Below are positions 3,001-36,800 of a stretch of 64,000 nucleotides of DNA, piece after piece. The notes under the pieces were generated by a model. The model was not told the DNA's origin and ran no database searches. It saw only the letters and a program-made list of their open reading frames with translations. The number at the start of each line of letters is the position of its first letter. The stretch's first letter is position 1. Source of the DNA: Macrostomum lignano (taxonomy: Eukaryota); the NCBI GenBank assembly GCA_002269645.1, contig NIVC01000149.1, forward strand, positions 186,001-250,000, written 5' to 3'. The position numbers were made by a program, and so were the translations under genes.

Positions 3001-6000
3001 GGATAGAGATCATGAAGGCAGGAATAGATACTTGGATAGAGATCATGAAGGCAGGAATAGATACTTGGATAGAGATCATGAAGGCAGGAATAGATACTTG
3101 GATAGAGATCATGAAGGCAGGAATAGATACTTGGATAGAGATCATGAAGGCAGGAATAGATACTTGGATAGAGATCATGAAGGCAGGAATAGATACTTGG
3201 ATAGAGATCATGAAGGCAGGAATAGATACTTGGATAGAGATCATGAAGGCAGGAATAGATACTTGGATAGAGATCATGAAGGCAGGAATAGATACTTGGA
3301 TAGAGATCATGAAGGCAGGAATAGATACTTGGATAGAGATCGTGAAGGCAGGAATAGATACTTGGATAGAGATCGTGAAGGCAGGAATAGATACTTGGAT
3401 AGAGATCATGAAGGCAGGAATAGATACTTGGATAGAGATCATGAAGGCAGGAATAGATACTTGGATAGAGATCATGAAGGCAGGAATAGATACTTGGATA
3501 GAGATCGTGAAGGCAGGAATAGATACTTGGATAGAGATCATGAAGGCAGGAATAGATACTTGGATAGAGATCGTGAAGGCAGGAATAGATACTTGGATAG
3601 AGATCATGAAGGCAGGAATAGATACTTGGATAGAGATCGAAGGCAGGAATAGATACTTGGATAGAGATCATGAAGGCAGGAATAGATACTTGGATAGAGA
3701 TCGTGAAGGCAGGAATAGATACTTGGATAGAGATCATGAAGGCAGGAATAGATACTTGGATAGAGATCATGAAGGCAGGAATAAAAACTTGGATAGAGAT
3801 CATGAAGGCAGGAATAGATACTTGGATAGAGATCATGAAGGCAGGAATAGATACTTGGATAGAGATCGAAGGCAGGAATAGATACTTGGATAGAGATCAT
3901 GAAGGCAGGAATAAAAACTTGGATAGAGATCGTGAAGGCAGGAATTAAAACTTGGATAGAGATCATGAAGGCAGGAATAGATACTTGGATAGAGATCATG
4001 AAGGCAGGAATAGATACTTGGATAGAGATCATGAAGGCAGGAATAGATACTTGGATAGAGATCATGAAGGCAGGAATAGATACTTGGATAGAGATCATGA
4101 AGGCAGGAATAAAAACTTGGATAGAGATCGTGAAGGCAGGAATAAATACTTGGATAGAGATCGTGAAGGCAGGAATAGATACTTGGATAGAGATCGTGAA
4201 GGCAGGAATAGATACTTGGATAGAGATCATGAAGGCAGGAATAGATACTTGGATAGAGATCGTGAAGGCAGGAATAGATACTTGGATAGAGATCGTGAAG
4301 GCAGGAATAGATACTTGGATAGAGATCGTGAAGGCAGGAATAGATACTTGGATAGAGATCGTGAAGGCAGGAATAGATACTTGGATAGAGATCATGAAGG
4401 CAGGAATAGATACTTGGATAGAGATCATGAAGGCAGGAATAGATACTTGGATAGAGATCATGAAGGCAGGAATAGATACTTGGATAGAGATCATGAAGGC
4501 AGGAATAGATACTTGGATAGAGATCATGAAGGCAGGAATAGATACTTGGATAGAGATCATGAAGGCAGGAATAGATACTTGGATAGAGATCATGAAGGCA
4601 GGAATAGATACTTGGATAGAGATCATGAAGGCAGGAATAGATACTTGGATAGAGATCGTGAAGGCAGGAATAGATACTTGGATAGAGATCATGAAGGCAG
4701 GAATAGATACTTGGATAGAGATCATGAAGGCAGGAATAGATACTTGGATAGAGATCATGAAGGCAGGAATAGATACTTGGATAGAGATCGTGAAGGCAGG
4801 AATAGATACTTGGATAGAGATCGTGAAGGCAGGAATAGATACTTGGATAGAGATCATGAAGGCAGGAATAGATACTTGGATAGAGATCATGAAGGCAGGA
4901 ATAGATACTTGGATAGAGATCATGAAGGCAGGAATAGATACTTGGATAGAGATCATGAAGGCAGGAATAGATACTTGGATAGAGATCATGAAGGCAGGAA
5001 TAGATACTTGGATAGAGATCGTGAAGGCAGGAATAGATACTTGGATAGAGATCGTGAAGGCAGGAATAGATACTTGGATAGAGATCGTGAAGGCAGGAAT
5101 AGATACTTGGATAGAGATCATGAAGGCAGGAATAGATACTTGGATAGAGATCGTGAAGGCAGGAATAGATACTTGGATAGAGATCGTGAAGGCAGGAATA
5201 GATACTTGGATAGAGATCGTGAAGGCAGGAATAGATACTTGGATAGAGATCATGAAGGCAGGAATAGATACTTGGATAGAGATCATGAAGGCAGGAATAG
5301 ATACTTGGATAGAGATCGTGAAGGCAGGAATAGATACTTGGATAGAGATCATGAAGGCAGGAATAGATACTTGGATAGAGATCATGAAGGCAGGAATAGA
5401 TACTTGGATAGAGATCATGAAGGCAGGAATAGATACTTGGATAGAGATCATGAAGGCAGGAATAGATACTTGGATAGAGATCGTGAAGGCAGGAATAGAT
5501 ACTTGGATAGAGATCATGAAGGCAGGAATAGATACTTGGATAGAGATCATGAAGGCAGGAATAGATACTTGGATAGAGATCGTGAAGGCAGGAATAGATA
5601 CTTGGATAGAGATCGTGAAGGCAGGAATAGATACTTGGATAGAGATCATGAAGGCAGGAATAGATACTTGGATAGAGATCATGAAGGCAGGAATAGATAC
5701 TTGGATAGAGATCATGAAGGCAGGAATAGATACTTGGATAGAGATCATGAAGGCAGGAATAGATACTTGGATAGAGATCATGAAGGCAGGAATAGATACT
5801 TGGATAGAGATCATGAAGGCAGGAATAGATACTTGGATAGAGATCATGAAGGCAGGAATAGATACTTGGATAGAGATCATGAAGGCAGGAATAGATACTT
5901 GGATAGAGATCATGAAGGCAGGAATAGATACTTGGATAGAGATCATGAAGGCAGGAATAGATACTTGGATAGAGATCATGAAGGCAGGAATAGATACTTG

Positions 6001-7750
6001 GATAGAGATCATGAAGGCAGGAATAGATACTTGGATAGAGATCATGAAGGCAGGAATAGATACTTGGATAGAGATCATGAAGGCAGGAATAGATACTTGG
6101 ATAGAGATCATGAAGGCAGGAATAGATACTTGGATAGAGATCATGAAGGCAGGAATAGATACTTGGATAGAGATCGTGAAGGCAGGAATAGATACTTGGA
6201 TAGAGATCGTGAAGGCAGGAATAGATACTTGGATAGAGATCATGAAGGCAGGAATAGATACTTGGATAGAGATCATGAAGGCAGGAATTGATACTTGGAT
6301 AGAGATCGTGAAGGCAGGAATAGATACTTGGATAGAGATCGTGAAGGCAGGAATAGATACTTGGATAGAGATCATGAAGGCAGGAATAGATACTTGGATA
6401 GAGATCATGAAGGCAGGAATAGATACTTGGATAGAGATCATGAAGGCAGGAATAGATACTTGGATAGAGATCATGAAGGCAGGAATAAAAACTTGGATAG
6501 AGATCGTGAAGGCAGGAATAGATACTTGGATAGAGATCGTGAAGGCAGGAATAGATACTTGGATAGAGATCGTGAAGGCAGGAATAGATACTTGGATAGA
6601 GATCATGAAGGCAGGAATAGATACTTGGATAGAGATCATGAAGGCAGGAATAGATACTTGGATAGAGATCATGAAGGCAGGAATAGATACTTGGATAGAG
6701 ATCGTGAAGGCAGGAATAGATACTTGGATAGAGATCATGAAGGCAGGAATAGATACTTGGATAGAGATCATGAAGGCAGGAATAGATACTTGGATAGAGA
6801 TCATGAAGGCAGGAATAGATACTTGGATAGAGATCATGAAGGCAGGAATAGATACTTGGATAGAGATCATGAAGGCAGGAATAGATACTTGGATAGAGAT
6901 CATGAAGGCAGGAATAGATACTTGGATAGAGATCATGAAGGCAGGAATAGATACTTGGATAGAGATCATGAAGGCAGGAATAGATACTTGGATAGAGATC
7001 ATGAAGGCAGGAATAGATACTTGGATAGAGATCATGAAGGCAGGAATAGATACTTGGATAGAGATCATGAAGGCAGGAATAGATACTTGGATAGAGATCA
7101 TGAAGGCAGGAATAGATACTTGGATAGAGATCATGAAGGCAGGAATAGATACTTGGATAGAGATCATGAAGGCAGGAATAGATACTTGGATAGAGATCAT
7201 GAAGGCAGGAATAGATACTTGGATAGAGATCATGAAGGCAGGAATAGATACTTGGATAGAGATCGTGAAGGCAGGAATAGATACTTGGATAGAGATCGTG
7301 AAGGCAGGAATAGATACTTGGATAGAGATCGTGAAGGCAGGAATAGATACTTGGATAGAGATCGTGAAGGCAGGAATAGATACTTGGATAGAGATCGTGA
7401 AGGCAGGAATAGATACTTGGATAGAGATCGTGAAGGCAGGAATAGATACTTGGATAGAGATCATGAAGGCAGGAATAGATATTGGATAGAGATCATGAAG
7501 GCAGGAATAGATACTTGGATAGAGATCATGAAGGCAGGAATAGATACTTGGATAGAGATCATGAAGGCAGGAATAGATACTTGGATAGAGATCATGAAGG
7601 CAGGAATAGATACTTGGATAGAGATCATGAAGGCAGGAATAGATACTTGGATAGAGATCATGAAGGCAGGAATAGATACTTGGATAGAGATCGTGAAGGC
7701 AGGAATAGATACTTGGATAGAGATCGTGAAGGCAGGAATAGATATTTGGA
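1..7750. repeat. 33-bp satellite, unit TTGGATAGAGATC(A/G)TGAAGGCAGGAATAGATAC, about 235 copies, truncated by the window start
   Basis: Near-perfect head-to-tail units. One common dimorphic site (CAT/CGT), rare 32- and 31-bp deletion units and AAAA variants. No unique spacers. Confidence 0.98.
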
Positions 7751-8338
7751 TATATTTTTTAGCTTAGCGACAAACATCTCCACCTGCTAGCTCGGCCAGA
7801 TAATATTAATTGCCCTTGGAGACTCAGATAAATTTTCAAAATTGTTTCCAGGCAGTTGATGATTGACAGGTTCGAGCAAATTTTCGGGGACGAAGAAATC
7901 GCCTTTTGTCTCCAAGCGAAAAGGGGGAACTGGGCCCAGGGTTGCTAGGCCTGAGTTATGCTTGGATCCCACCCCGCACAAGTCTGCAGAGCTGCGGTGG
8001 AGTCTGCGACACAGCGCATGTTTGAGCTGCATCGGACTGCTCAGGTTTAACAATGTTTTTTTCCGCTATCTTATCGCTGCAGCCGGCAAAGCTCGATGGG
8101 AGACGGGGTGGATGAAAGGCCGAAGCCTCGTTTTGCTTTTAATCTTAGCCGCTCCGAGTTCGCTTTGCGAGGCCGGCGCCTCCACACAAAGCGGCCAATT
8201 TTTTGAATCGGGACCATTTTTTGCCGGTTCAGCTGGCGCGGAGGTCGAATATTCCCATGAATCCCGACCGCATGGCTGATGCGATTTGGGCCAAGTTGGC
8301 TCTGCTGTTTGCAAGTGCTTCACCTGCCTTCATTGTTA

Positions 8339-8872
8339 GAGTGGGTGTGGAATGGTGGGGCTGTTACTGAGGGTGTTACAGAGTGGGTGTGGAATGGTGG
8401 GGCTGTTACTGAGGGTGTCACAGAGTGGGTGTGGAATGGTGGGGCTGTTACTGAGGGTGTCACAGAGTGGGTGTGGAATGGTGAGGCTGTTACTGAGGGT
8501 GTTACAGAGTGGGTGTGGAATGGTGGGCTGTTACTGAGGGTGTCACAGAGTGGGTGTGGAATGGTGGGGCTGTTACTGAGGGTGTCACAGAGTGGGTGTG
8601 GAATGGTGGGGCTGTTACTGAGGGTGTCACAGAGTGGGTGTGGAATGGTGGGGCTGTTACTGAGGGTGTTGCAGAGTGGGTGTGGAATGGTGGGGCTGTT
8701 ACTGAGGGTGTTACAGAGTGGGTGTGGAATGGTGGGGCTGTTACTGAGGGTGTTACAGAGTGGGTGTGGAATGGTGGGCTGTTACTGAGGGTGTCACAGA
8801 GTGGGTGTGGAATGGTGGGGCTGCTACTGAGGGTGTCACAGAGTGGGTGTGGAATGGTGGGGCTGCTACTGA
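8339..8872. repeat. 42-bp G-rich minisatellite (GAGTGGGTGTGGAATGGTGGGGCTGTTACTGAGGGTGTCACA), about 12-13 copies
   Basis: Direct tandem units; 14-aa periodicity in the ORF track. Confidence 0.95.
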
Positions 8873-10506
8873 GTCTGTTACGGTGTGCAGTGGGTGCAGA
8901 ATCGTGAGGCTGTTACAGAGGGTGTTACGAATGGCAATAGAATTTATAGCTGTGTCACAAGGTAAATGTGAGGGTGTTGCAATTGTTATAGAAATCTGAA
9001 GCTACCTGTCTGCCTTAATGCCATTGCGTGAGGTGCGACGATGCGAGCCTCTATTCATTATGACTGCCAGCTCCAGGTGCATTGACTTTGGTGCAAAAGT
9101 GGGTGCTACAATTGAATTTTTTAAACCTCGACTCAGACTTGAGGGGTTTGAGTCGATGTGTCACAACGTCAATCTTAATTTCATAGCCTCAAAGCTTGGT
9201 CTAGTGGTGCAAAAATGCGGTTTCCCTTCCACATCCCAGTGAACATTGTCGCCCCTATTAATCTATCAATCATTTTAACAAATTGTCAATCAAAGCCATC
9301 CCAACGCGTGCCTCGCCCACTACAAGTTTTTACGGTTCACAAAGAAATTCACAAAAGTTGATTGGACTGGCTGGGTGCTAGAAGCAAACACTTCTCTGGC
9401 CTTCGTGTCTGCCTGCCCCGTCTGTCTCTCCGAAGCGAGCACAAACTGTTTTGAATGGCATCGGCGAGCAACAGGTGGCTTCAAGCAAGCCCGGGCCACT
9501 TCTGCTTTCGTCTCTCTCGGCCACGGCACACCCGGGCAAGCCTCGGGGTGCCGGGGAGGGGGGGGTCGTGCGCCCCTCCCCTCTCCCCCTCACAGTATTC
9601 AGGTTACAAGTGTAGACGGGCGATGGACCAGCGCTGCGGGGGGGGGGGTTGGGCCATAGACTAAACACACTCCAGTCCCAAGTCGGGCTTTGACAATGGG
9701 CTTGTTTTACTCTCTTGTTAAAATTGAAAATTTTCGAACAACCTCTTCTGCGCCTGTCTGTGGATTGAAGCAGCTCCGACTATCGATTGAACAACAAAGC
9801 CGAGGATTTTCTGTGCTTCTCTTTGTCAAGAGCTCGTCTTCAACTGCACACTCCCGCTCCCTGGGGGCACACAAATGAAGCGCGGGCATGTGGCAAGTGA
9901 AGAAGATCGAAATTTCTAGTGCAAGAAAGAAGTTGAAAGAGGCAGTTTGTTGAAATGCAGTGTGAAGTGACAGAGGAAGAGATAAGGCGCCGGGCGTGAC
10001 TGAGGGGGGAGGGGGGCTTCACTGGGGCACATAAAGGTGTGGCTGATTTTGACAGCCATTCATTTTTGCTGCACGTATTCATAGATGCGGATCGCGGCCC
10101 TCGTATCAATTGTTAATATCACGGCCGGCTGCAACATGCTTCGTTAAAAATCTGTTCCTACAGCGAGGCTGTGCTGCACTAATCAGCCTGTCAACCTGTC
10201 CATCATCAGTCAGTTCGTGTCAGTGCTCGATTTTGGCTGCTTGATGGACACTGCGTTGATTGCACTGACAAAGCTATGGGCTGGATTTGGACATATGATC
10301 GCTTTTTCTGTGTACCTGCCTGCCTGCCTTATCAATGTTTCTGTTTGACATGCGCCACACTAATGCAGGTGTTATTTGAGCATAATTGCGCCCCCCCCCC
10401 CAGACTGGAGGTTTTAAGCTGTGAGGGAGATGGCATGGAAACCAGGACTCCAGTTTAAAAGCTTGAGATTGGAGCAGATAGAGATAAGGAAGAGACAGAT
10501 GGAGAG

Positions 10507-10862
10507 TGCCTGGTGGACAGTGGCAGAGACAGGGGAGGCTGGCTGGTGGACAGTGGCAGAGACAGGGGAGGCTGGCTGGTGGACAGTGGCAGAGACAGGG
10601 GAGGCTGGCTGGTGGACAGTGGCAGAGACAGGGGAGGCTGGCTGGTGGACAGTGGCAGAGACAGGGGAGGCTGGCTGGTGGACAGTGGCAGAGACAGGGG
10701 AGGCTGGCTGGTGGACAGTGGCAGAGACAGGGGAGGCTGGCTGGTGGACAGTGGCAGAGACAGGGGAGGCTGGCTGGTGGACAGTGGCAGAGACAGGGGA
10801 GGCTGGCTGGTGGACAGTGGCAGAGACAGGGGAGGCTGGCTGGTGGACAGTGGCAGAGACAG
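10507..10862. repeat. 33-bp minisatellite (CTGGTGGACAGTGGCAGAGACAGGGGAGGCTGG), about 10-11 copies; unrelated to the 1-7750 satellite
   Basis: Identical tandem units. Confidence 0.95.
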
Positions 10863-18695: not shown

Positions 18696-18984
18696 ATTCG
18701 ATTCATTCGCGTCAAAAGTTTTTATGACCATGCCATGCAGAGTAGAAATAGTATTGGAATATTAGTTCAGGCTCGAGACAGTCGCTGGCAGGACCTGCCT
18801 GCATGGGGTGGGCCCGCGGCTTCGGCACGAATTTCCGCTGCCTGCTGGCGAGCAGCATGCGGGACTGCCTGTCTGTCTGGCCCGGCTGCAGCCTGTGGGT
18901 GGTCCGCCTTCCACTTCTCCTGCTTTCTGATCTCCTCAGTTGGACTGGCAAAAGTGTCAATGATGCTGACAATTGCTTCGAGCC

Positions 18985-19320
18985 GGCATCCTGCCACTTG
19001 ACTGCCACTACTTGACTGCCACTATTTGACTGCCTGCCATTTGACTGCCAGCCATTTGACTGCCACTATTTGGCTGCCTGCCGTTTGACTGCCACTATTT
19101 GACTGCCTGCCATTTGACTGCCACTATTTGACTGCCACTATTTGACTGCCACTATTTGACTGCCACTATTTGACTGCCTGCCATTTGACTGCCACTCTGC
19201 CACCACTTGACTGCCTGCCACTTGACTGCCACTATTTGACTGCCTGCCATTTGACTGCCACTATTTGACTGCCACTATTTGACTGCCTGCCATTTGACTG
19301 CCACTATTTGACTGCCACTA
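18985..19320. repeat. 14/15-bp minisatellite (ATTTGACTGCCACT / ATTTGACTGCCTGCC)
   Basis: Two interleaved unit variants; an isolated seed-like copy sits near 18340-18370. Confidence 0.9.
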
Positions 19321-20224
19321 AGGGTCAGCAGAAAATTTGTGACAGTCAGATGGCTCCCAGTCAAACGTCAGGTTCCTTGCTTTGGTTTGAGTTAAAAAAT
19401 CTGCGCCGGATTTTTGAGTGAAAATCCCTGCCTAAGGGATTAGGATGGACTATGGGAGATTTGAGAAGCTGAAAATTAACGAGCTGGAACTCGGTGAAGC
19501 TGGGGACACGCGATGACGTGATGCAATTTCCAAGACTCATACAGCGTCTGTTCCATTGCTTCCGCTCTGCTCCCTTCCCCTTTGAGGATCGAAGATCCAA
19601 CGATTCTTAGAAAAGGAATCCTTCAGTATCAATGTCCCCTGGAGCAGATCAGTTCGGCGATCGGGGTCCCGATCCCGTCTGTGAGCTGTGGTCGGAGCGG
19701 CACCATGAGATCACACAATGGTACTCGACCACGCGATTAGGAAGGGAAGATGCGGAGCGCGGGGGACGGCCAGGCTCTGCAGCCGAGCTAATGACATGGG
19801 CCAGTAAAACATAGGAAATGCAAACACAAACAGGGCATAAATTTTGCAACTGACTTTATACCAGGGGGTCTGCGCAGCGACATCGGTGAGAAAGTTCCCC
19901 CCAGGTCGCGCTTTTTTGACATTACAAGCCACGGTTGAAGCGTTATTAACATTGAAGCTGGCAGAGACATGCAAAGGTAGTTCGGCATGCGGACCGGCAC
20001 TAAGGTGGGGCCCAATGGGTCGCTGACTCCAAGGGCCACAGAGCCAAGATGAAAATTGCGCAGAAGATTGCCGAGCAGCAGAGAGAGAGAGGGGGGGACG
20101 GCCCGAATTCTAAGGTAGAAACCACACAGGGCATGTGGCACCCTGAGTGTTAAGTGTTGGCATGAGTGCGGACTGCAGTCAGGTAGGTTTGCGTAATTGC
20201 GCAGTGTCAACCGCTTTTGCCTTT

Positions 20225-20608
20225 ATCTTTGGATTGGGCGTTCCGGCTTCTGTCAGGACTGTCTCAGGAGCTCCTCAGCTGCATGTGACCGTGTCCTTCA
20301 GGCTTCTGTCAGGACTGTCTCAGGAGCTCCTCAGCTGCATGTGACCGTGTCCTTCAGGCTTCTGTCAGGACTGTCTCAGGAGCTCCTCAGCTGCATGTGA
20401 CCGTGTCCTTCAGGCTTCTGTCAGGACTGTCTCAGGAGCTCCTCAGCTGCTGTCCTTCAAGCTTCTGTCAGGACTGTCTCAGGAGCTCCTCAGCTGCATG
20501 TGACCGTGTCCGCCAGGCTTCTGTCAGGACTGTCTCAGGAGCTCCTCAGCTACACCTGACCGTGTCCTTCAGGCTTCTGTCAGGACTGGCTCAGGAGCTC
20601 CTCAGCTG
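20225..20608. repeat. 56-bp minisatellite (GGCTTCTGTCAGGACTGTCTCAGGAGCTCCTCAGCTGCATGTGACCGTGTCCTTCA), about 6-7 copies
   Basis: Tandem units; one has an internal deletion. Confidence 0.92.
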
Positions 20609-20815
20609 TTCCGTCTTGATTCCATCTTATTCTTTGACTCTTTCCTGCTGGCTCCCCCTCATCAACCACCTTCGCTCTCACCAAGTCTTCCCTGTTTCTT
20701 TCTCTACATCTTTATTTTCATTCTCCCTCCCTGTTTACTTCCTTTCCGTTGCTCCCACCTTCAATCTGTTGCACAGCCTTCCCCCCATTCTCGCCTGCAA
20801 TTTTCTATTCCCAAG

Positions 20816-20943
20816 ACGACATGCTGGAGGTCCAGTCTGAGCTGCAGGAAGCGGGGGGCCCGGCACCCTCTACTCGGTCAAGCAGCCGACGGAGCAACAA
20901 GCTAAAATATATTTTTGCTATTCCAACCGGAAGTTCGGCTTGA
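20816..20943 (+). CDS. Possible short exon (DDMLEVQSELQEAGGPAPSTRSS...) within the zinc-finger/TALE locus
   Basis: Long pyrimidine tract ending CCCAAG|, then GC3-rich codons. No strong donor found; 3' boundary uncertain. Confidence 0.25.
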
Positions 20944-22989
20944 TACCCGTGTGAAAATTTCTGGGACAGGAAAAGCCCAGCGCGACTGCCATGAGTCTTC
21001 TTCTTCTTCTTCTCTCGCTCTCGCTCTTCTCCCCCGACGCTGGGGCATAAAAGGCGGGCCTCAAACTCGCATTTGCTGCAATGCTTTTAAGCCTGCCAGC
21101 TCATCGCGTCTTTTGTGGATGCCAGCCAGTTACTCTGTGTATTATCCAACCTCTGCAGTGCCATCAGGCTGGGGGCATTTTAAACCCGCCTGGCATGGAG
21201 AGCAGATTCAGGTTTTATACAAAAGACGAACTGGCAGTGGGTATTTACCCTGACAACAAGACGCAGCCTCCCCCCCCGTCTGGCACAGCCGGCCTGCCGT
21301 GCATCCGATATCAATAATTGGCACAGGCTAGGCAAAGATGCAGCTATTAGTTGGAAACTGGCTTACAGGATCAGGTTGAGATTCGGATACCTTTTTAGTC
21401 GTTTTGGGAAGAAATAGAGAGAGAGCGCGAGAGACAGAAAGAGGATTTCTGCTTCTTAGCCGGCGATTCCGCGGAAGCAGCAGAACGGAGCCTTGGGATG
21501 ACAGCGGGGATGGCTGTCAGCTGAGCCAAGGCCTGGGCGCCGGGCCTAAAAGGCAGGATTTTTCTAAAAAATGAAAGGATCTCTGCATGGGGAGAAGCGG
21601 CTGCGTGACAGTGACAGCTGGCCTCCACCCCCCCCCCCCACGGCCTCCCAAATTCACCGTAGCGGGGGGGAGGCTGCAGCGGCAGCAGGCAGCATGCTGC
21701 AGGCTGGGCTCACCTCGGACTTCCCAAAGCACTAACTCTCTCTCTCTCTCCTCCCCAGCCCCAGCGGCCTCAACCTCTTGCCGATTGCCTTTCTCAAGCG
21801 GCTCCTACTCTCTTCTGGATTCTCCCTGCCAGGTCTCTGTCTGAGAATGGATGCACCTGATGTCACCTGACCGCGAATTCAATGCCACCTCGTCAGCTCC
21901 CTTCGATAGGTCTCTCAACTGCCAAGAAAGCTGGGCTCTCTGTGGAACCATCTCTGCGGAAGATCTTCTCCTAGAAGCAAGGCAATAGGGGACACCCCAC
22001 TCCCACTCAGCCGTCTATGCCGCCGCCGACTCCCCAGGGGGGGGGGCGCCCCGCCGAGCTGGGAGTCAGCAGTTAAGAGAAACATTAGGATGGAACACGG
22101 GAGGAGCTAAGGAGCTGGGACAAATGAGGGACAGGAGCAGAATGGGGCTGCGTGCTGGGCAGGGAGGGGCGACAGAAGGGGCTGAGGGCGAGGAACCCAA
22201 ATGGCTCCCGGTTTGACAGATGACACTGACAGATAAGAGAAAAGGCGGCTTTGAATTCTCCAGCCTTGCAGTGCCCCAGGTTTGGGTGGTGGGGGCGGGG
22301 AGACGGCTCTCGGGCTCGCGTGCTGCCCCCCCCCCGTGTCCCGTCGCTCTTTGACATGCCAGCTGTCGGGCTACAACTGTCACCCCAGCCTGCCCTGCCG
22401 AGCCGCACACTTAGGGCCGAGACCCCCGGGGGGTCGCCTCTCGCTTCAGCGACATCCATTTCTACTGATCTATCAGGCCTTCTGCGGCCCCGTCGCTAAC
22501 AAGCCGCGTTCCCCGCCAGACCGGCTCTCCCCTCCTCTCTCTTGGCCGGTTATCACTTTAATCGCATAAATAAATCCCCCAGCTAAAGAGGCGCTTGGAA
22601 CCCTCCAATTTTCCCATTGGGCGGCTGGGCGAAATCTTGTTGACACTTGGCCCCTTATCCTCGGCTGAAATCGCTGCTAACAGTGGGTGGGGGAGCATCC
22701 GGCAGACAGCTTTCGGATGTCCGTCTTTGCAGGGCTGCATGGCAGCAAGGCTTTGGGGCTGAGGCCGGGACTGCTTGACAGGGGCACCTGGTGCACTGCG
22801 ACAGCTACTTCTAATCCTGCCTGTCTCTTCCAACTTCAATGCCCTTTGACATGCTGACTGTCTGTCGCTGTTTTTCTGTTTCTACTTTAGCCCTGCTGCT
22901 ACTGCCCTTGCTGTGGCATTCAGCCTAAGCCGGCAAACCCCGGCCTTTGGGTGCTTTCATAATAGCAATCCGGCCTGCTCAAGGCTCGT

Positions 22990-23310
22990 GTCTCCTCTCA
23001 GCTCTATTCTCTTCTCACTTCTGTTCTCTTCTCCTCTCTCATCTTTTCTCTTTTCTTTCTTTTCTTCTCTTCTCTATTCTCTTCTCTTCTCTTAACCGTT
23101 CTCTCCACTTTCTTCCATCTACTCTTCTCTTCTCTTCTCTCCTCTTTTCTCTTCTCTTCTTTCTTCTCTCCTCTTGTCTCTCCTCTTGTCTCTTGTCTCT
23201 TCTCTATCTTCTCTCTCTTCTCACCTCTTTTCTATCTTCACCTCTCTCCTCTTTTTCCCTTCTCTTCTCCTCTCCTTTCTTTTCTCCCATCCATCCTCTC
23301 ACCTCCTCTC
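22990..23310. repeat. Polypyrimidine low-complexity tract (TTCTC/CTCTT)
   Basis: Almost purine-free on the + strand. Confidence 0.9.
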
Positions 23311-23734
23311 GACATTAATTAAGAGTAGCCTTGTTGGAAAGCTTTCTGGCTTCCGGATTACTTTTTCGTTGCTGCTTCTGGGCAATTTCACAATTCTGCT
23401 TTTCTACTCGGACCTGTTTTTAAGCGCATCGCAGCCGCACTAAAAGAGAACTTTCCCACCGTCGAGCAGAGCAGAAGCAGCAAGTTGATCTGTTTTCTGT
23501 CAACAAGCAGAACTGGGGCGCGAAAGACCGCCAGGCCTGATGGACAGATGTTTACTGGGGATAACCAGGAGGGCCCTGGGTCAGCTGGATCGGATCAGCT
23601 GCCTCACTTTGCCAGTTTCTCTGTGGTTTGAATGCATCTAGATTTTCTTCGAAACACAGAAGCAAACTGGAATATAGTTAGTATTAGTGTCCGTCTGTCT
23701 CACCGTCCGTCTATCCGTCTGTACGAGTGTATAT

Positions 23735-24180
<446 letters not shown>

Positions 24181-24212
24181 TGCAAGAATCTCCAACCGAT
24201 TGGCATTCGCAG

Positions 24213-25769
24213 ACGAGCCGCAACGGCCTGGCCGATGAGGCGGCAGCTTCAGAAGACGAGGAAGCAGCCGGCAACGCGTCTGCCGCATCCGCTGCTGCGG
24301 CTGCCAACAAGTCGCCTGAATCCCCGGTGAACTTGGACACAAAGTCGGCACCGGCAAGGCGCAAGCGACCTGCGAACGAGTCGCCCGCCAGGCAGCCGCA
24401 CAAGCAGCAACTGCAGAAACTGCAGCAGCAGCAGCAGCAGCAGAAGCGGCGTCACCTGCCGCAGCCGCTGCCCCTGACGCCCCCGCCGCGGCCAGCGCTG
24501 CCTCTGCAGTCACCGACGCCGATCTCCTCAACTGAGCGCGTCACCAACGGCGGCGGCTCCGCGCCCAACGTCAAGGTCGAGGAGCTCGCCGCGGTCAATT
24601 CCGGTGATGAAGTCGATGAAGAAGACTTGGAGGAGCTGGAGGAGGAGCTCGACGAGGGGCCCGACGCGCTGAACAACCACTCCGGCTCCGAGGACACCAC
24701 CGAGTCGGCCGGCGGCTCCGACGGCTTTCTGTCCTACGCAGCCGCCGCCGCCGCCGCAGCCTCCTACCCGGGCTTCCCGTTCTTCAGCGGCGCCCTCGGC
24801 CCGATGGCGCTGCACCACTCGTTTGCCGCCTTCGCTGGCCAGGCGGCCGCTCCGCTGTTCTTGCCGCCGCCGCCGCCGCCTCCGCCGCCCCCGCAGACTA
24901 CAGGCAGCGCCACCACCACCAGCAGTCTGGAGCTGCTACGCAAGAGTTTCCAGCCGTCCAAGTCCAGCGCATTCCAAACTCCGTCGCATCCCTCCCAGCT
25001 GCCTCAGCCGCTCACGCAGTCGGCCTCATCCTCCTCGTCGGCAACCTCCGTCGTGGCCTCCGGTGAAGTGGCTGACGCAGCAGTCAGGGAAGCCCAGCCG
25101 GCAACAGACAGTCCCGGCTCCGATGCCGGCGTGGAAAATCAGCATCAGGCGCAGCTTCTCCAGCAGCGACATCGTCTGCAGCACGGATCCGGCGTGTCCG
25201 CGGCTGCCGCTTCGCCGTCCTCCGCAGTTCTCGGCTCTTCGCCTTGCAGCGGCGGCGGCGGTGGCGGAGGCGGCAGCGTCGGTTCTCTGCGCCTTGACTG
25301 GTGCTCCATCAAGCGGGGCTCGCGGCCCAACCTGCCCTACTCGGCGCGCAGGAAGCTGTTCCACTGGCTGGCCACGCACCTGCACCAGCCCTACCCGTCC
25401 GAGGAGCAGAAGGAGGCCCTGGCTAGGGACACCCAGCTGACCAAGACCACCGTGAACAACTGGTTCATCAATGCCCGACGCCGCTACGTGAAGCCGCTGC
25501 AGGAAGGCCGCACGGTGCCCGGATTTGATCTCTACCGGGTCGCCGGGCTGCGGTCTCCGGAGCCGCCCTGCTCTGTCGACAGCAGCGGCGGCGTCATCGG
25601 CGTTGGCGGCGTCGGCTCGACTTCGCCCGACTCCGCGGCCATCTCCGTGTCGTCTCCCCCGCCGCCGACGCAGCAGCCGCCGCTGCCAGCACCGCCGCCG
25701 CAACAGCAGCAGCCGCAGCTTCCTACGGTGATGCCGCTGAGCGAGAAGCTGGAACCGAGCACGCCCTGA
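24213..25769 (+). CDS. Terminal exon of a divergent TALE-class homeobox gene (Meis/Prep/TGIF-related homeodomain at about 25314-25500)
   Basis: [61 protein letters not shown] has the TALE loop [10 protein letters not shown] and WFINARRR (I50). Flanked by poly-Q/P/A/E tracts. Acceptor is either TTCGCAG|24213 (phase 0) or TTGCAAG|24187 (phase 1). Confidence 0.93.
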
Positions 25770-28633: not shown

Positions 28634-28717
28634 CAATTAGCCACGCTCTGATAAGCCGTGCGCTGATAAGCTGGGCTTATAAAATGCAAAGTCGACTGAT
28701 GCGAAGCTCACTCAGTC
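28634..28717 (+). promoter_or_regulatory. Candidate promoter of the neuropeptide gene: two TGATAAG (GATA) sites, TATAAAA and an Inr-like TCAGTC
   Basis: TGATAAG at 28649-28655 and 28664-28670, TATAAAA at 28678-28684, TCAGTC at 28712-28717; ATG at 28802. Confidence 0.5.
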
Positions 28718-28801
28718 GCTGGAAGGCTACGATTGTCAATCAGAAAGTTCCCAGTCTTAGTTGAGCAGAGAACTTTAAAAAATTCTACTGAAGGAAACTT
28801 C

Positions 28802-29074
28802 ATGCCAGCTTTGATGCATCTTCGAGGCGCTCAGCTGCTGCTTCTGCTACTGCTGCCGATTCTGCTGACGGCTTCGCCGGCCGCTCATCCGCAGGCCACC
28901 GCGCCCAGCCCGCGGCAGGTCCTGGCGCACCATCCGCCGCAGGGGCCGGTCCCGGTCTCGAATCCCTGCCCGAAGCCGAAGCCGCCGGGCAGCGAGAAGG
29001 AGCTCCGGGACTACTTGAAGTGCCTGGAGAAGTACTTCGATTCTGAGAAGGGCGGCTGGTGGGGCCGGCGCTGA
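28802..29074 (+). CDS. Secreted neuropeptide precursor, NPY/NPF-like (PP-fold), with atypical GGWW-amide C-terminus, 90 aa, apparently single exon
   Basis: Leu-rich signal peptide, Pro-rich segment, helix SEKELRDYLKCLEKYF, then GGWW-G-RR-stop (amidation Gly plus dibasic site). Tyr at -10 and -17, Leu at -13 and Pro at -29 from the amidated end, as in NPY/NPF. Confidence 0.8.
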   Translation: MPALMHLRGAQLLLLLLLPILLTASPAAHPQATAPSPRQVLAHHPPQGPVPVSNPCPKPKPPGSEKELRDYLKCLEKYFDSEKGGWWGRR

Positions 29075-29864
29075 TAAGAGAGAAACTCGGACAGCCTCAG
29101 CGCAGTAATGCTATATTCCTATATTTCTCTCGATATTATATTTTCTTGCAGCTGTCGCTACAGAGTTTTGCGCAAGACAGGAAAAACAAACATTTTAAGA
29201 CTTCGAGATAAGATTCCGTAAACTAATTCTTGATCAGCGTTTGCAATATATTTAATGAAAAATACACGTGTCAACGCCATTCTCACCATAATGGTAATCT
29301 TCGTTGGAATAACTCGGTGATTAATTATTTGGGCTCTAATTGCAATAATTGACAGGCCATAGTTAAGGTACTAACCTCTCATCATCAGTAGTACAGTCAC
29401 ATGATAAAGAAACGAGGATATGCCACGCGGAGACTATAAACATATGGTTAACAGAACGATAAGAAAACAAGGATATGCCAGTCTGAAAAAAGGCATATTA
29501 AAAGTCTACAGATTGATGTTCGGTGCAACACGCATACATTTCTACACACTGATAGCGCAGAGAACGGTCGGATAAAATACAAGGACCAAACTGAATGCAT
29601 GTATAGATCGGCGAGTTTTATCAGTTGATCCTTCTATCCGTCTGACTGCATTCCGAAAATAAGTTTGCATTCAAGTCTGGTAAATTTGGAGAAGAGAAGA
29701 ACGGGTAATTATCAATTGTATCGAGGATATACCTTATTCTGCATTTTGACGAAATTCTTGAAATTTAATATTGATTTTACTTTATTTGTTTTATGCTCAA
29801 AACCATAAATATCGCGATCGGAGTCATCCCCGGCTCATTCTAAACTTCTATAAACAACAACAAA

Positions 29865-31040
29865 TTACGCAGCCCTGTGAGGATCTGTGTCACTGTACCG
29901 CGTTGCTGCCGGAATCCGTTCTGCTCGTACCGCATGTACGGGTCCAGCACCGACTGCAGACGATCGAGCAGCAGCCGGTTGAAGAGCTTTGCGGTGCAGG
30001 ACATCAGCGAGATCCCGCGGTGGTCTTCTTTCCGCGTTGTCCCTGCATTCTTCGGGATCGGCACGATGTGCGCAATTGTCCACTCGGTGGGCGCAGGAGC
30101 GCCGGCGAGCACGCGGTTCATGACGCCTGTGACCTGGGAAGTCACACAGCGGAGCCGCAGCGCTTCGACTGGGACTTCGTCAGGGTCGAGCGCCTTGCCG
30201 CCTGATGTTTTCCGAACGAACAGCACAACGTCCTGGGCTGGTGACTGGGCTGGTGCAGAAGTCCTCCTCAGCTTTCTGCGCCCCGTCAGAGTCCGGACGG
30301 CCGTCCACACTGCGCGGCTCTTCACGTCGGGGCCGGCTGCAGTGATGGACCTGACGGCGTCGTCGACAGCGGTCTGCTGCCGCTCTTCTAGAAGGCGCTC
30401 AAACGCGTCTTCAGCGTTACCCGTGGGCCACCGGTTTCTTCGGAGTCACTCGATGTTGCAAGCAGTGCTTGCCTGATGGTCGGGTCGACCCGCATCAGTC
30501 GCAGGAACAGCGAAGCGCAGTGCACGCTCTGCCGAAGGCGCGGTCCGCGGTCGTCTGCGAACGTGTACAGGAGGCTCCAACCGTCTCCAAAAAGGTCCTC
30601 AAAGTGGAGCACCGGCTCAGCCACGATAGAAAACCTCGTGCAGAATGATGAGGTCCAGATGTAGGTCGTGGGTCAGCTGGACGAGGATCATGCGACGCAG
30701 GGGGCATCAGAGTTCGGCAGTTCATCGTGCCGAGTCTAAGGCGTCCACCTGGTACAGCTGGAGCCAGATGAAGGTTGGCCTCATGGTCCCCGGCTCCACC
30801 CGGCGGATCCATAGTTGGAGTTGCAGGGACTCGGGGCAAAGGCGCCTGACCGCGCCACGGAGTAGCCCTCGCCGGTTGCGCTCGCGCTGCCGTTCAGTGC
30901 GACGTTGCGCGCTGCGCCGACCTTTGCGAGTCACAACTGTGCTGAACTTTGCTGCCGCAGCCGAAGCGCGGCCGTCCGAGCCAACCGAGGTCATCCGCGG
31001 CCCGATGATCTGGCTGCGATGCCAGATGTCAGCACTATTA
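29865..31040 (-). mobile_element. Non-LTR retrotransposon (RTE-like LINE) 5'/middle fragment, internally deleted
   Basis: Endonuclease start LRLGTMNCRTL, then RT N-terminal blocks ALDPDEVPVE..IVPIPK..HRGISLMS..AKLFNRLLL..EQNGFRQQRGTVTQI; breaks off before RT motif A. 5' boundary approximate. Confidence 0.88.
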
Positions 31041-33827: not shown

Positions 33828-36800
33828 TCAGGTGCGATAAAAAATTCTAGTTTTCTTGGCCAAGCGTTCGTTTCGCCTGGGTGACGGCTTGGATTGAACT
33901 CCAACCTCAGTCTGTTGCTGTTGTGCTCTCTCAGCTTGTTCTGTTCCCGGTAGTATCTCAGTGTCTGTCAATGACGGACGCGTCTGTTGGCCATCGTCAC
34001 TTGGACTGCTGCCACCGGGCTTGGAATCCCCCATTTCCGTAGTTCCGTGAGCCTCAAGTACCTCACCGATTCGTAGTTGATCGAGGTGGGTCTTTAGATT
34101 TCGTCCAGTCTCTGTGGTGACAACTGCTGTGTTGCTGCCAAGCATTTTGGCGAATCTCACAGTTCGTGGCTCATGAGAACTCGATGCACGGTAGATGAGT
34201 GATTCTCCTGGGATCCACTTGGACTGAGTGCTGCTCTCCGAGATGGGGAGTCTTATTTGTCTGCCGTTCAATAACTCGGACGGTGATGCTTGCTGCTTCC
34301 CTTTGGCAGCTCTGTAGAACAGTAGAAATCTGTCAATACTTCTTTGGGATAAACCATTGGTCTTGATTGTCTCTTTGACGGTTCGCACCATTCGCTCTGC
34401 AATGCCGTTGCTCTGTGGATGGTAGGCGGGCATTGTGATGTGCAAACAGCCAATCTGGGTGAGCCAGCCGGTCACCGCTTCGCTCATAAAACTAGGGCCG
34501 TTGTCTGACACGAGACACTTGGGCACCCCCTGTTGTGAGAACAATCTTCTAAGTCTGGAAATGACTGTGTCAGCCTTCATGTCGCTCGTGATGAAGACTT
34601 CCGGGTATCTCGAGTGCGCATCCACAATGATGAGTAGATACTTGCCCTCTATCGGACCGGCAAAATCAATGTGCACTCGCTCCTAGGGGTTGTCAGGTTC
34701 TGGCCACAAGTGCCGAAAGTTCTTATTTCTGGACTTGTACGCGTTGCACACGTTGCATCGTCCAATGTAGTCAGCGATGTCACGGTCCATCTGTGGCCAC
34801 CAGAACTGTTCCCTCAAAATTGACTTTGACTTTTCCACCCCAAGGTGTGTTGAGTGTACAGCTGCCAGGGCAGTTTCTCTCAGGACACGAGGCAATACAA
34901 TTCTGTTCATTCTGTAAATAATTCCATCATTGACAGTTAGCTCATCTTGAACCTTCAAGTAGCTGAGTAGGTGTGGGTCGTCAAATAGATTATTGTTAAT
35001 TATGGCTGCGCCCAGGCATCTGAACTCCGGGTCCTCTCTGGTTGCGTGTGCAATGCGATCTAGCTGAATTACTCCCGGGTTGTCAGCTTCGAGGAGTCCA
35101 ATCAATGCTATCTGTGCTTTCGGCTTAGCGGGCACCAGTCAAGATAGCGCATCCGACAGCATTAGCTTTGATGGTTGATACTGTATGACATAGTCATAAG
35201 CAGCTAGCATGATTGCCCATCGTTGTAGTCGAGCTGAAACTCTAGTGGGCAGCTGTTTGTCTGGCGCGAATATGTATGTGAGGGGCCAGTGATCAGTTAT
35301 CAGTGTGAACCTCCGGCCATACAAGAACCGATGGCATCTTTGAATGCACCAAACCAGTGCCAGGCCTTCACACTCTATTTGCGAATATTTTGTTTCGGCG
35401 TCAGACAGAGTCTTGCTCATGTACAGCACGACTTGACCGCTTTGTGTCAACACTCCGCCCAGAGCTCGCTGAGAACTGTCACATTCCAGTTCAATGGGCT
35501 TCTCCGGATCAAATATTTGAAGACTCGATTGATCAGAGAGAGTGACCTTGATTTCGTCAAATGCTATTTGACACTCCTTTGTCCACTCAAAGTCCTCATT
35601 TTTCTTTCTTAGTCGATTGAGAGGCTTGGTCAGTGCAGCTATGTTTCTGATGAACTTGCCACTAAAATTTACGAGACCCAGGAAGGATTCAAGCTCGCCA
35701 ACATTCTGCGGTGGTGTCATGTCCTAGATTGCTTTCACTTTGGCTGGGTCCGGCTTGAGCTGATCTCCTTCCAATAAGTAGCCTAGAAATTTGATCGAAG
35801 TCTTGCGGAATTCACTTTTTGCCGTGTTGATCTTCAATCCTTGCTGGTTTAGTCGATGCAATACTTCCGTCTCATGAACTGTTAATTGTTCTACGCCTTT
35901 GCCGCATATCAATATGTCGTCTATGTAGGCAATGACGCCAGGAATTCCTTGTAGGACTTGGCTAATGTATTGCTGGAAGATCGCAGGTGCTGTTTTCACT
36001 CCGAACGGAAGCTTGTTGAAAGTGAACATCCCAAATGGTGTTGACATTACTGTCAGCTCTTTGGAATCTTCATCTAGTGGGATCTGGTGATAAGCTTTCT
36101 CTAGGTCCAGACGAGTATAAATCCGGCTGCCAGCAGCAGTTGCAATCACTTTGTCAGGTGCAGGCATCGGATATGAATCGTTGATAAGATGAGAATTGAT
36201 TGGCACCTTGTAGTCGACGCAAAGTCTGAGCTTTCCAGAAGGTTTCTTGACCACGACAATTGGTGAGGCCCATTCACTGAACTTGACAGGCTTGATGGTG
36301 TCTTCTTCAAGCAACCAATCGATTTCATCCTTGACTCCCTATCTGAGTGCGAAGGGTAGCGGCCTGGGTTTGCAATGAATTGGAGTGGTTCCTTCCTTGA
36401 TCTTAAGAGTTACTGGTGGAAATTCGCATGACTGGGTTGCCGATGTGCAGCTGTTGTCTACAGCGTTTAGCATGAAATTGAGCTTGTCTCGGCCAACCAG
36501 AATAAAGTTCCTCTGCGATTCCACAATGAAGAATGTGATTGGAATGAACTCGTCATTGTACTCCAACTCAGTGTTGTGTGTTCCAAAGACCTTCATCTGC
36601 GTATCAGCGTATGTTGTCAGAACAGTGTCTGTAGGTGTCAGCTTTGGACACCCAATCGTTTCCAGATCATTTTTGACATTACCGAAACTCCTGCCCCAAT
36701 ATTGATTTGTGCGTTCACGCTAAGCATCGACCCGCTCGTGTGTCTGAGCCTAACAGGCACGGTGTAGCTATCAACGGGATGTCGATTGTGAAAACAATCC

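Follow-up and report, generated by a model that had tools for sequence, protein, structure and literature searches.

We describe in Macrostomum lignano a gene for a small secreted protein whose C-terminal 36 residues probably descend from the NPY/NPF (PP-fold) superfamily, of which they would be a divergent member with a probable disulfide staple and a non-canonical message end. The gene lies on the forward strand of a 64,000-nucleotide stretch of contig NIVC01000149.1, which is referred to here as the window. NPY/NPF peptides are defined by a near-invariant R-x-R-[FY]-amide end, which is read by their receptors. A PP-fold paralogue carrying a GGWW-amide message and a covalent staple would show the re-use of a hormone scaffold for a new target. 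It would also offer an orphan ligand to be paired with the described orphan flatworm-specific rhodopsin-type GPCRs. The most unexpected point is that the sole homologue detected is a bacterial protein.

The gene is real and transcribed in M. lignano, because it belongs to a transcript-built annotation, its copies are intact, its GC3 is host-like and its contig carries flatworm genes. The annotation was produced from RNA-seq and transcript assemblies only, plus TransDecoder (PMC5730564), and lists the ORF (translation: MPALMHLRGAQLLLLLLLPILLTASPAAHPQATAPSPRQVLAHHPPQGPVPVSNPCPKPKPPGSEKELRDYLKCLEKYFDSEKGGWWGRR*) as the single-exon gene Mlig021254.g2. The corresponding model is a 357-nt CDS in one unspliced block that ends in GGWWGRR*, in agreement with the earlier note, which had taken the gene to be intronless. 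Two M. lignano contigs code for one and the same protein, and PAA47850.1 is a variant of it with an additional Leu; at least three intact genomic copies of the gene exist. The homeologous contigs differ at 23 sites in 4.4 kb, and the single change in the CDS is synonymous, which is too few for inferring selection. GC3 of the ORF is 0.81 as compared with 0.74 in a neighbouring homeobox ORF, and flatworm genes and retroelements are present on the contig, with retroelement fragments adjoining the gene. Bacterial contamination was ruled out because the contigs concerned (345 kb and 395 kb) contain a homeobox gene, an RRM gene and retroelements, and GC3 is host-like. The TBONE/trans-splicing method used for the annotation has been described (PMC5730564). 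Given that the gene is named as 'g2' of a transcriptional unit, the AG next to the 5' end of the model is possibly a spliced-leader trans-splice acceptor. The features of the locus are compiled in Table 1.

Table 1. Features of the candidate gene and its surroundings (positions are those of the window)
Feature	Position	Strand	Basis or remark
Candidate TATAAAA box, possible core promoter	28679..28685	+	Lies some 31-37 nt 5' of the start of the annotated transcript; function suggested by sequence
AG (28714-28715) directly preceding the start of the gene model; start of partial CDS (28718)	28714..28718	+	Sequence and annotation
Full-length CDS in one exon, 90 codons and TGA	28802..29074	+	Sequence and annotation; ATG at 28802, TGA at 29072-29074
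Putative signal peptide, residues 1 to about 27, MPALMHLRGAQLLLLLLLPILLTASPA	28802..28882	+	Cleavage site judged by eye
Pro/His-rich N-terminal extension, residues 28-51	28883..28954	+	No dibasic site; single Arg (R38); no counterpart in the bacterial homologue
Putative 36-residue PP-fold module, residues 52-87 (NPY numbering 1-36)	28955..29062	+	NPF HMM, HHalign, AlphaFold, Foldseek
Cys56 codon, PP-fold position 5 (Pro in ordinary members)	28967..28969	+	Sequence and alignments
Cys74 codon, PP-fold position 23 (ordinarily polar and exposed)	29021..29023	+	Sequence and alignments
SEKGGWW, residues 81-87, in place of the family end I/V-x-G-R-P-R-F	29042..29062	+	Identical in the bacterial homologue
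GT where NPY/NPF genes have their conserved intron (penultimate codon, phase 2)	29059..29060	+	Forced by TGGTGG; unused in the annotated model
Gly-Arg-Arg-stop: putative amidation donor and dibasic site, no C-flanking peptide	29063..29074	+	In register with NPF G-K-R

The resemblance of the module to NPF/NPY is, as judged by profile and alignment comparisons, real but weak. The earlier note had assigned Tyr, Leu, Tyr and Pro to positions -10, -13, -17 and -29 and Cys to -32 and -14; with W87 as -1, these are indeed Y78, L75, Y71, P59, C56 and C74. The register which this implies was recovered by gapless alignment, by an NPF HMM and by HHalign. When an HMM of 41 NPFs, built with the candidate left out, was run against the 1041 six-frame ORFs in the window that are 30 aa or longer, the candidate ranked first (15.3 bits, E 0.0011; runner-up E 0.19). 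The alignment contained no gaps (HMM positions 7-32 on residues 55-80), and its extension placed G88-R89-R90 on the G-K-R of the family. Gapless alignments were likewise obtained with planarian NPY-1 to -11 and with spiralian NPFs. The HHalign score against the NPF alignment was 34.9, a value reached by none of 400 shuffles (maximum 18.7). When the candidate was combined with its bacterial homologue and compared with 22 NPFs, HHalign returned a probability of 93.5% and P 2.2e-7. The sole Pfam match of the mature part was Hormone_3, at E 0.026 and 15 bits, which is under the cut-off of 28.7 bits. At database scale, a mixed planarian-NPY profile retrieved 42 NPFs and neither an M. lignano protein nor a GGWW-type peptide. 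The sequence match to NPF is significant locally and not at database scale.

The overall plan of the precursor is that of the family, i.e., a signal peptide (basic n-region, Leu-rich core and small residues at -3/-1 by inspection), a single PP-fold peptide, and Gly followed by a dibasic site. In the candidate the signal peptide is followed by a Pro-rich stretch, an amphipathic helix and KGGWW-G-R-R-stop. The same succession of signal peptide, one peptide and Gly-dibasic site is found in spiralian NPFs (Schmidtea mediterranea NPY-1 to -11 as well as mollusc and annelid members; PF00159, Hormone_3). Also common to both are an N-terminal arm rich in Pro, including Pro8, and a helix with the motif ELRDYLKxL..Y[FY], in which Tyr20, Leu24, Tyr27 and an aromatic residue 28 are aligned gaplessly; the amidation Gly follows Tyr27-Phe28 at a distance of eight residues in either case. 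The NPF core residues Pro8, Tyr20, Leu24, Tyr27 and Phe28 are present, whereas position 5 has Cys for Pro and is flanked by Pro on both sides (positions 4 and 6).

By contrast, the end of the candidate reads K-G-G-W-W where spiralian NPFs have G-R-P-R-F/Y. The R-x-R-[FY]-amide end is absent (K-G-G-W-W-G-R-R), whereas all 41 compared NPFs have R-P-R-[FYL]. Cys has taken the place of Pro5 and of a polar residue at position 23, and the N-terminal extension of about 25 residues lacks a cleavage site. The annotated CDS is devoid of the conserved penultimate-codon intron. As the earlier note had stated, there is no C-terminal flanking peptide; KGGWW is followed by G-R-R and the stop codon. The two features absent here, the RxR[FY]-amide end and the penultimate-codon intron, are the most diagnostic ones of the family.

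In npy genes of planarians an intron interrupts the codon for the penultimate residue (Collins et al. 2010, PMC2953531). Smed-npy-11, an 'atypical neuropeptide Y', has a long Pro-containing N-terminal part and ends in ...SRPRL-amide, and Smed-npy-10 lacks a C-flanking peptide (Collins et al. 2010, PMC2953531). They are flatworm precedents for NPY paralogues without the terminal aromatic residue (npy-11) or without CPON (npy-10). However, npy-11 retains Arg33, Pro34 and Arg35 and the conserved intron, all of which the candidate has lost while gaining two cysteines.

With Wamide/MIP peptides, including mollusc 'WWamide', the candidate has only the predicted amidated C-terminal Trp in common. Peptides of this superfamily comprise 7-12 residues, occur in multiple copies per precursor and have a W-x6-W motif and no PP-fold. 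Membership was ruled out because the candidate precursor contains one copy of a long helical peptide and neither internal repeats nor cleavage sites. A literature search found no mention of a GGWW-amide peptide family or of Mlig021254, so that, as far as this search shows, GGWW-amide is not an already published family. Neither the candidate nor its bacterial homologue had a match in NCBIfam or PHROGs.

Structure prediction is in line with the PP-fold proposed in the earlier note. The AlphaFold model, computed from a two-row alignment (mean pLDDT 76.6), has a helix at residues 65-83, which correspond to PP-fold positions 14-32; within the module, P55-P62 would form the polyproline segment, E65-K83 the helix and GGWW the tail. 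The only two Foldseek matches of this model in the PDB were an aPP-derived miniprotein and aPP (TM 0.56-0.65, rmsd about 1 Å), with E-values of 6-9 that are not significant for such short chains. In the model of the bacterial homologue the helix spans positions 14-31, and one of its three matches was an aPP-based miniprotein. A PDB sequence search with the family profile returned no NPY or PP chain and only two chance-level matches. The candidate is predicted to share the polyproline-turn-helix hairpin (helix 14-31/32) of aPP and aPP-derived miniature proteins (PDB 9d9a, 5wlb_B, 2k76). In natural aPP, however, the two arms are not joined by a disulfide, and the C-terminus is RPRY-amide. Since aPP already serves protein engineers as a miniature-protein scaffold, a natural disulfide-stapled PP-fold would be of interest to them.

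Cys56 and Cys74 are 18 residues apart. This spacing is identical in the bacterial homologue, and both proteins are secreted and otherwise 55% identical. By contrast, none of the 41 NPFs has Cys at PP-fold position 5 or 23. Because both residues are co-conserved in a secreted homologue and never Cys in NPFs, they probably form a disulfide bond.

Taking the processing signals together, we propose that the signal peptide is removed from the prepropeptide and that the Cys56-Cys74 disulfide (PP-fold positions 5 and 23) forms in the secretory pathway, where it would tie the polyproline arm to the helix. A carboxypeptidase would then take off Arg-Arg, and Gly88 would be converted to yield a C-terminal Trp-amide. 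No dibasic site is present between the signal peptide and the PP-fold module; therefore the mature peptide may comprise about 60 residues rather than 36-39. The product would be a stapled PP-fold peptide, possibly of this length, in which K-G-G-W-W-amide replaces the receptor-contacting G-R-P-R-F-amide. With its message end replaced, such a peptide should act on a target other than the canonical NPF/NPY receptor.

Among 1.84 billion representative proteins, the sole homologue is WP_440994039.1, a 75-aa Sec-secreted hypothetical protein of Cysteiniphilum litorale (phmmer: 41.3 bits, bias 0.1, E 1.9e-5 for a database of this size; per-pair P about 1e-14). Cysteiniphilum litorale (Fastidiosibacteraceae) is a marine, invertebrate-associated emerging pathogen which infects invertebrates and humans. 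The two secreted proteins are 55% identical over 33 residues and share Cys5, Cys23, CPKPxPP, Ser13, Leu17, Tyr20, Leu24 and SEKGGWW. They constitute a two-member 'CPKPxPP...SEKGGWW' family defined by Cys5/Cys23 at fixed spacing, the CPKPxPP arm, the helix, SEKGGWW and secretion. Taken alone, the bacterial protein also aligns with the NPF profile in the register of the flatworm protein (P 2e-5, 0/400 shuffles), and its mature chain begins at PP-fold position 1. It differs from the flatworm protein by lacking the Pro-rich extension and the Gly-dibasic site, and a 12-residue tail, SDIRVKQNINIL, follows GGWW. Its gene is bacterial, with an RBS and low GC (GC3 0.29), and is located between a type I secretion/RTX locus and plsY, adjoining a phage tail-fibre chaperone remnant. 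The idea that the adjacent C39 ABC exporter handles this protein as a double-glycine bacteriocin was ruled out in view of the Sec signal peptide, the divergent orientation and the affiliation of the exporter with the RTX operon.

Further members were sought in several ways. Word-indexed protein searches with the precursor or the two-member alignment returned only the query itself or the bacterial protein, and neither these searches nor the phmmer search of 1.84 billion representative proteins revealed an orthologue in other animals. When the two-member alignment was searched against 185,579 species-representative prokaryote genomes, and likewise against viral contigs and JGI metagenomes, no confirmed match emerged. 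A looser DNA pattern, C-P-x-P...C...G-G-W-W, occurred at no fewer than 80 loci in genome contigs; all those listed were out-of-context chance matches in GC-rich genomes, and AT-rich true matches could lie outside the loci listed. All nine matches of a viral pattern scan were due to chance.

A module common to a flatworm and a bacterial secreted protein suggests that this peptide type was transferred long ago between an animal lineage and a marine bacterium living in association with hosts, with animal to bacterium as the more likely direction. We tentatively propose, as one possibility, that an unrecognised disulfide-stapled GGWW branch of the PP-fold superfamily exists in marine invertebrates, and that Cysteiniphilum litorale acquired one copy from an animal and now secretes it, perhaps in imitation of a host peptide. 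Should the homology be due to transfer, a secreted version of an animal peptide-hormone fold would be present in a marine bacterium that is pathogenic to invertebrates and humans, and host-peptide mimicry would be directly testable. Capture from an animal would, if true, make this the first bacterial example of a PP-fold neuropeptide-like protein and an instance of animal-to-bacterium transfer of a signalling peptide.

The opposite route, which we consider unlikely, is that a small Sec-secreted, disulfide-bonded mini-protein of bacterial origin moved into the Macrostomum lineage and was domesticated there by addition of a eukaryotic signal peptide, a promoter and the G-R-R end. The likeness to NPF would then reflect convergence on a polyproline-helix hairpin and not descent. 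Such an origin would be compatible with an intronless gene in a genome averaging about 5 introns per gene (PMC5730564), with the lack of a C-flanking peptide and with the retroelement fragments next to the gene. Moreover, the single clear homologue is bacterial and without amidation signal, none was found in other animals, and at 41 bits it is by far a stronger match than the NPFs at 15 bits. On the other hand, only one bacterial protein was recovered although the library is dominated by prokaryotes. With no confirmed match in the 185,579 species-representative genomes, which for the looser DNA pattern refers to the 80 loci listed, and with a phage tail-fibre remnant adjoining it, the gene has the look of a rare accessory gene in bacteria. 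It also speaks against a bacterial origin that each of the two proteins on its own aligns with the NPF profile, in one and the same register, while they retain different consensus residues (ELRDYLK in the flatworm, LNE-Y in the bacterium), and that the flatworm G-R-R-stop falls exactly on the NPF amidation site.

Even as a secreted PP-fold peptide, the product need not be a hormone or neuropeptide. It might instead be an exocrine effector, for example a gland, adhesive, seminal-fluid or defensive mini-protein, with the stapled PP-fold as scaffold and GGWW as structural cap or target-binding patch; we judge this improbable. The maintenance of SEKGGWW in a bacterial protein that cannot be amidated, with 12 residues beyond the motif, points to a reason for conservation that is independent of a C-terminal amide and to a role that needs no free amidated end. 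Likewise, the long Pro-rich extension has no convertase site, and the putative disulfide suggests a need for extracellular stability. Against an effector stands the G-R-R-stop in NPF register, the classical signature of amidated neuropeptides. Nor do two studies of M. lignano expression (reproduction-, germline- and position-specific transcripts) list the gene in the supplementary tables that were searched, which is a weak argument as these tables may be incomplete.

The amidated GGWW end, as proposed above, presupposes that the coding sequence is read through to GGWWGRR*. Were this a canonical NPF gene, the mRNA would be spliced at TG/GT (29058/29059) to an exon encoding x-[FY]-G-K-R, and GGWWGRR* would represent intron read-through in unprocessed transcripts. 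The GT is located exactly at the intron position of planarian and vertebrate npy genes, and precursor mRNAs make up about 7% of assembled M. lignano transcripts (PMC5730564). The earlier note was right about the location of this GT, which lies inside TGG/TGG. The GT is no independent evidence of a relic splice site: Trp is encoded by TGG only, so any Trp-Trp pair contains GGTG and the GT is automatic. A relic donor was therefore ruled out. Completion of a codon that begins with TG yields Trp, Cys or stop and never Arg, and residues 33-34 are already Gly-Gly rather than Arg-Pro. The spliced alternative C-terminus that the note had wished to see excluded was looked for within 16 kb downstream. 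No exon there supplies a canonical aromatic-G-[KR][KR] end, no RF-amide exon was found, and R[FYW]G[KR][KR] does not occur in any plus-strand frame; of 958 AG acceptors, one gave a loose fit (C-V-G-K-S) and is a poor acceptor. Finally, both Trp of SEKGGWW are kept in the bacterial homologue, which identifies the second Trp as coding sequence. Splicing to an RF-amide exon is thus largely refuted and, in our view, very improbable.

That the ORF arose by chance in a transcribed intergenic region and encodes no functional peptide is hardly credible: although the annotation says only 'hypothetical protein, partial', the ORF has a homologue in a distant organism at the per-pair P given above, the full grammar of a secretory peptide, several intact copies, host-typical GC3 and the top NPF-profile match in the window. 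Across the six frames of the window, just two ORFs end in [FYW]-G-[KR]-[KR]-stop, and the candidate is one of them.

The reading of the 90-residue flatworm peptide as a variant of the NPY/NPF superfamily is partly supported: predicted fold, likeness, intronless gene structure and non-canonical end hold up. Its homologue in a bacterium is unexplained and potentially important.

Translation of the ORF (90 codons and TGA) yields MPALMHLRGAQLLLLLLLPILLTASPAAHPQATAPSPRQVLAHHPPQGPVPVSNPCPKPKPPGSEKELRDYLKCLEKYFDSEKGGWWGRR, then stop. With W87 as position -1, the residues singled out in the earlier note all lie where it had placed them, Tyr-10, Leu-13, Tyr-17 and Pro-29 being Y78, L75, Y71 and P59, and the cysteines at -32 and -14 being C56 and C74. 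The K-G-G-W-W end was also read correctly, and its second Trp is followed by Gly-Arg-Arg-stop. A six-frame translation of the window has only two ends of the type [FYW]-G-[KR]-[KR]-stop; the other one (...RLRFGYLFSRFGKK, then stop) lies within the span of a homeobox gene and is probably due to chance. The stretch separating the signal peptide from the PP-fold module (residues 52-87) contains no dibasic site, and about 25 Pro/His-rich residues may therefore remain on the mature peptide as an N-terminal extension.

Planarian NPY-1 to -11 (Collins et al. 2010, Table S5) and spiralian NPFs from the protein database align without gaps to the last 29 residues of the peptide, as in ...PQELRDYLKALNDYYAIVGRPRFGRS of Lamellibrachia versus ...SEKELRDYLKCLEKYFDSEKGGWWGRR. 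An HMM built from 41 NPFs, with the candidate left out, ranked it first among 1041 six-frame window ORFs of at least 30 amino acids (15.3 bits, E = 0.0011; runner-up E = 0.19). The gapless match (hmm 7-32, residues 55-80) covers the polyproline arm and the helix, not the C-terminal tail; when it is extended, G88-R89-R90 fall on the family's Gly-Lys-Arg. HHalign against 22 NPFs scored 34.9, with 18.7 as the best of 400 shuffles. The sole Pfam match of the mature part, Hormone_3 (E = 0.026), scored 15 bits, far under the gathering threshold of 28.7. Judged by HMM rank, register and shuffle test, the likeness to NPF/NPY is thus real and specific, as the earlier note had proposed, but weak.

The C-terminus departs from the family: all 41 NPFs end in R-P-R-[FYL], the flatworm peptide in K-G-G-W-W. 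Partial departures have flatworm precedents in npy-11, which ends in RPRL-amide, and npy-10, which lacks a C-flanking peptide (Collins et al. 2010). The annotation of GCA_002269645.1 rests exclusively on RNA-seq and transcript assemblies (StringTie, TACO, TBONE, TransDecoder; PMC5730564), and the annotated CDS is one unbroken 357-nt block running from the 5' UTR to the ORF's own stop. It follows that the locus is transcribed and that the transcript, as assembled, has no splice in the coding region, in line with the suspected absence of introns. In planarian and vertebrate npy genes an intron interrupts the codon of the penultimate residue (Collins et al. 2010); in the unspliced flatworm model this codon is TGG. 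The GT that had been flagged there as a possible donor is present but uninformative by itself, because two Trp codons (TGGTGG) impose it. Were it used (TG/GT), the completed codon could only be Trp, Cys or stop. Just one of 958 AG acceptors in the 16 kb downstream, a poor one, gives a loosely fitting continuation (C-V-G-K-S), and no forward frame of the next 16 kb encodes R[FYW]G[KR][KR]. A spliced RF-amide C-terminus is therefore very unlikely.

When 1.84 billion representative proteins were scanned in full with HMMER, one non-self match emerged (E = 1.9e-5, 41.3 bits, bias 0.1; per-pair P about 1e-14), the hypothetical protein WP_440994039.1 of the gammaproteobacterium Cysteiniphilum litorale, MSNQVKKIIIGTTTVIISTMTVNTAFASYPLCPKPTPPVSIQDLKNYVNCLNEHYHSEKGGWWSDIRVKQNINIL. 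On a 44-kb bacterial contig, its gene is flanked by a type I secretion/RTX locus on one side and plsY-fpg-holA on the other; it has a GGAGG ribosome-binding site of its own, and its composition resembles that of the host (GC3 0.29). Directly downstream, a stand-alone 111-aa ORF resembles phage tail fibres in their C-terminal chaperone part (phrog_5668, E = 9.5e-8; Pfam Peptidase_S74, E = 0.0076), which suggests that both genes sit in a small phage-derived accessory segment between the T1SS/RTX locus and plsY. Both proteins share Cys5 and Cys23 (PP-fold numbering), CPKPxPP, Ser13, Leu17, Tyr20, Leu24 and the seven-residue SEKGGWW. The bacterial protein has a Sec signal peptide (AFA/S), its mature part starting at PP-fold position 1, and extends 12 residues past GGWW without a Gly-dibasic signal, in contrast to the Gly-Arg-Arg-stop of the flatworm peptide. 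Taken alone, it aligns to the NPF profile in an identical register (HMM P = 6e-4; HHalign 76.8%, P = 2e-5; score reached by 0/400 shuffles) and still has consensus residues of NPF that are gone from the flatworm peptide (CLNEHY versus LNEYY); a profile of both sequences reached 93.5% probability against the NPFs (P = 2.2e-7). No further relatives were found in word-indexed protein searches, in profile searches of viral contigs and metagenomes or in a pattern scan of viral contigs, and none was confirmed in species-representative prokaryote genomes by profile search and pattern scan, among the matches listed.

A PP-fold is predicted. AlphaFold2, run on residues 49-87 with the bacterial protein as sole alignment partner (mean pLDDT 76.6; 85 at model residues 11-20, P59-L68, and 66 at 1-10), placed a helix at residues 65-83, that is PP-fold positions 14-32. 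Foldseek against 350,542 PDB chains gave only two matches, both avian-pancreatic-polypeptide scaffolds (5wlb_B and 9d9a; TM 0.56-0.65, rmsd about 1 A), with E-values of 6-9 that are not significant at such length. The mature bacterial protein is predicted to form a helix at 14-31 and a low-confidence tail helix, and the aPP-based miniprotein 2k76 is one of three structure matches to it. Most of the 41 NPFs have Pro at position 5, position 23 is occupied by a polar residue, and Cys occurs at neither in any of them. Conservation of both cysteines in two secreted proteins with otherwise 55% identity makes a Cys5-Cys23 disulfide staple plausible.

The evidence is explained most simply by a secreted, amidated PP-fold peptide descended from NPF that would have shed both the conserved intron and the C-flanking peptide, gained the Cys5-Cys23 staple and exchanged its receptor-binding end for GGWW. 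Binding to Y receptors requires Arg33, Arg35 and the amidated aromatic residue, and activation of canonical NPF/NPY receptors by the peptide is therefore not expected. The best-conserved block is SEKGGWW, even in the tail-bearing bacterial protein that cannot be amidated, which suggests either a binding epitope whose recognition does not need the amide or a structural cap that packs on the proline arm. The pair implies gene transfer across kingdoms. The direction from animal to bacterium is favoured because a library dominated by prokaryotes has a single bacterial member, which is absent from species-representative genomes among the matches listed and adjoins a phage remnant, and because both proteins resemble an animal-specific family. 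Transfer from bacterium to animal, with the PP-fold reached by convergence, is a live rival, albeit an improbable one. C. litorale is a marine species reported from wound infections that followed contact with marine animals and as a candidate coral pathogen, which makes encounters with invertebrate hosts plausible.

The exact flatworm protein is deposited as PAA47850.1 (BOX15_Mlig021254g2, 'hypothetical protein, partial', Macrostomum lignano). Contigs NIVC01000149.1, to which the window belongs, and NIVC01000604.1 both encode it, with a synonymous T/G as the single CDS difference; in a third gene copy the signal peptide differs by one Leu, its run of CTG/CTT codons specifying seven or eight Leu depending on the genomic copy. 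The suffix 'g2' denotes the second gene of a transcriptional unit. The peptide gene and its upstream TALE-class homeobox neighbour (E = 5.7e-18) may be transcribed together and separated by spliced-leader trans-splicing, the peptide gene possibly being the trans-spliced downstream member; a TATA promoter of its own is also possible. The surroundings, with the homeobox ORF, retroelement fragments, an RRM gene, a PID gene and a satellite, are clearly flatworm nuclear DNA; GC3 is similar in the peptide CDS (0.81) and the homeobox ORF (0.74). The 33-bp satellite, which a 42-bp repeat array adjoins, has strong GC and AT skew and long spurious ORFs on both strands. Odd for a flatworm contig is a 363-aa ORF whose match to the gp6-like helical domain of phage baseplates stays below threshold (E = 6.5e-6; 26.3 bits versus a cut-off of 27).

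Features of the window and, in the last row, of the bacterial contig
Feature	Position	Strand	Remark
33-bp satellite, unit TTGGATAGAGATCATGAAGGCAGGAATAGATAC	1-7752; 8338-8928		about 235 copies, 98% identity
TALE-class homeobox gene, span	18718-25769	+	upstream of peptide gene
Second [FYW]-G-[KR]-[KR]-stop end	about 21310-21410	+
TALE homeobox ORF	23727-25769	+	same strand as peptide gene; Homeobox_KN
TATAAAA box	28679-85		upstream of gene model's 5' end; from sequence
AG dinucleotide	28714-15		precedes gene model's 5' end; from sequence
Start of gene model (5' UTR)	28718	+
Peptide ORF	28802-29074	+
Leu run	28832-28855	+	signal peptide
Synonymous T/G	28843
GT in TGGTGG	29059-60	+
Retroelement fragments	29840-30322; 33828-34673
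363-aa ORF	55658-56749	-
RRM gene			in the neighbourhood
PID gene			in the neighbourhood
111-aa ORF	10323-10658 of JBPXJY010000023.1		directly downstream of bacterial homologue
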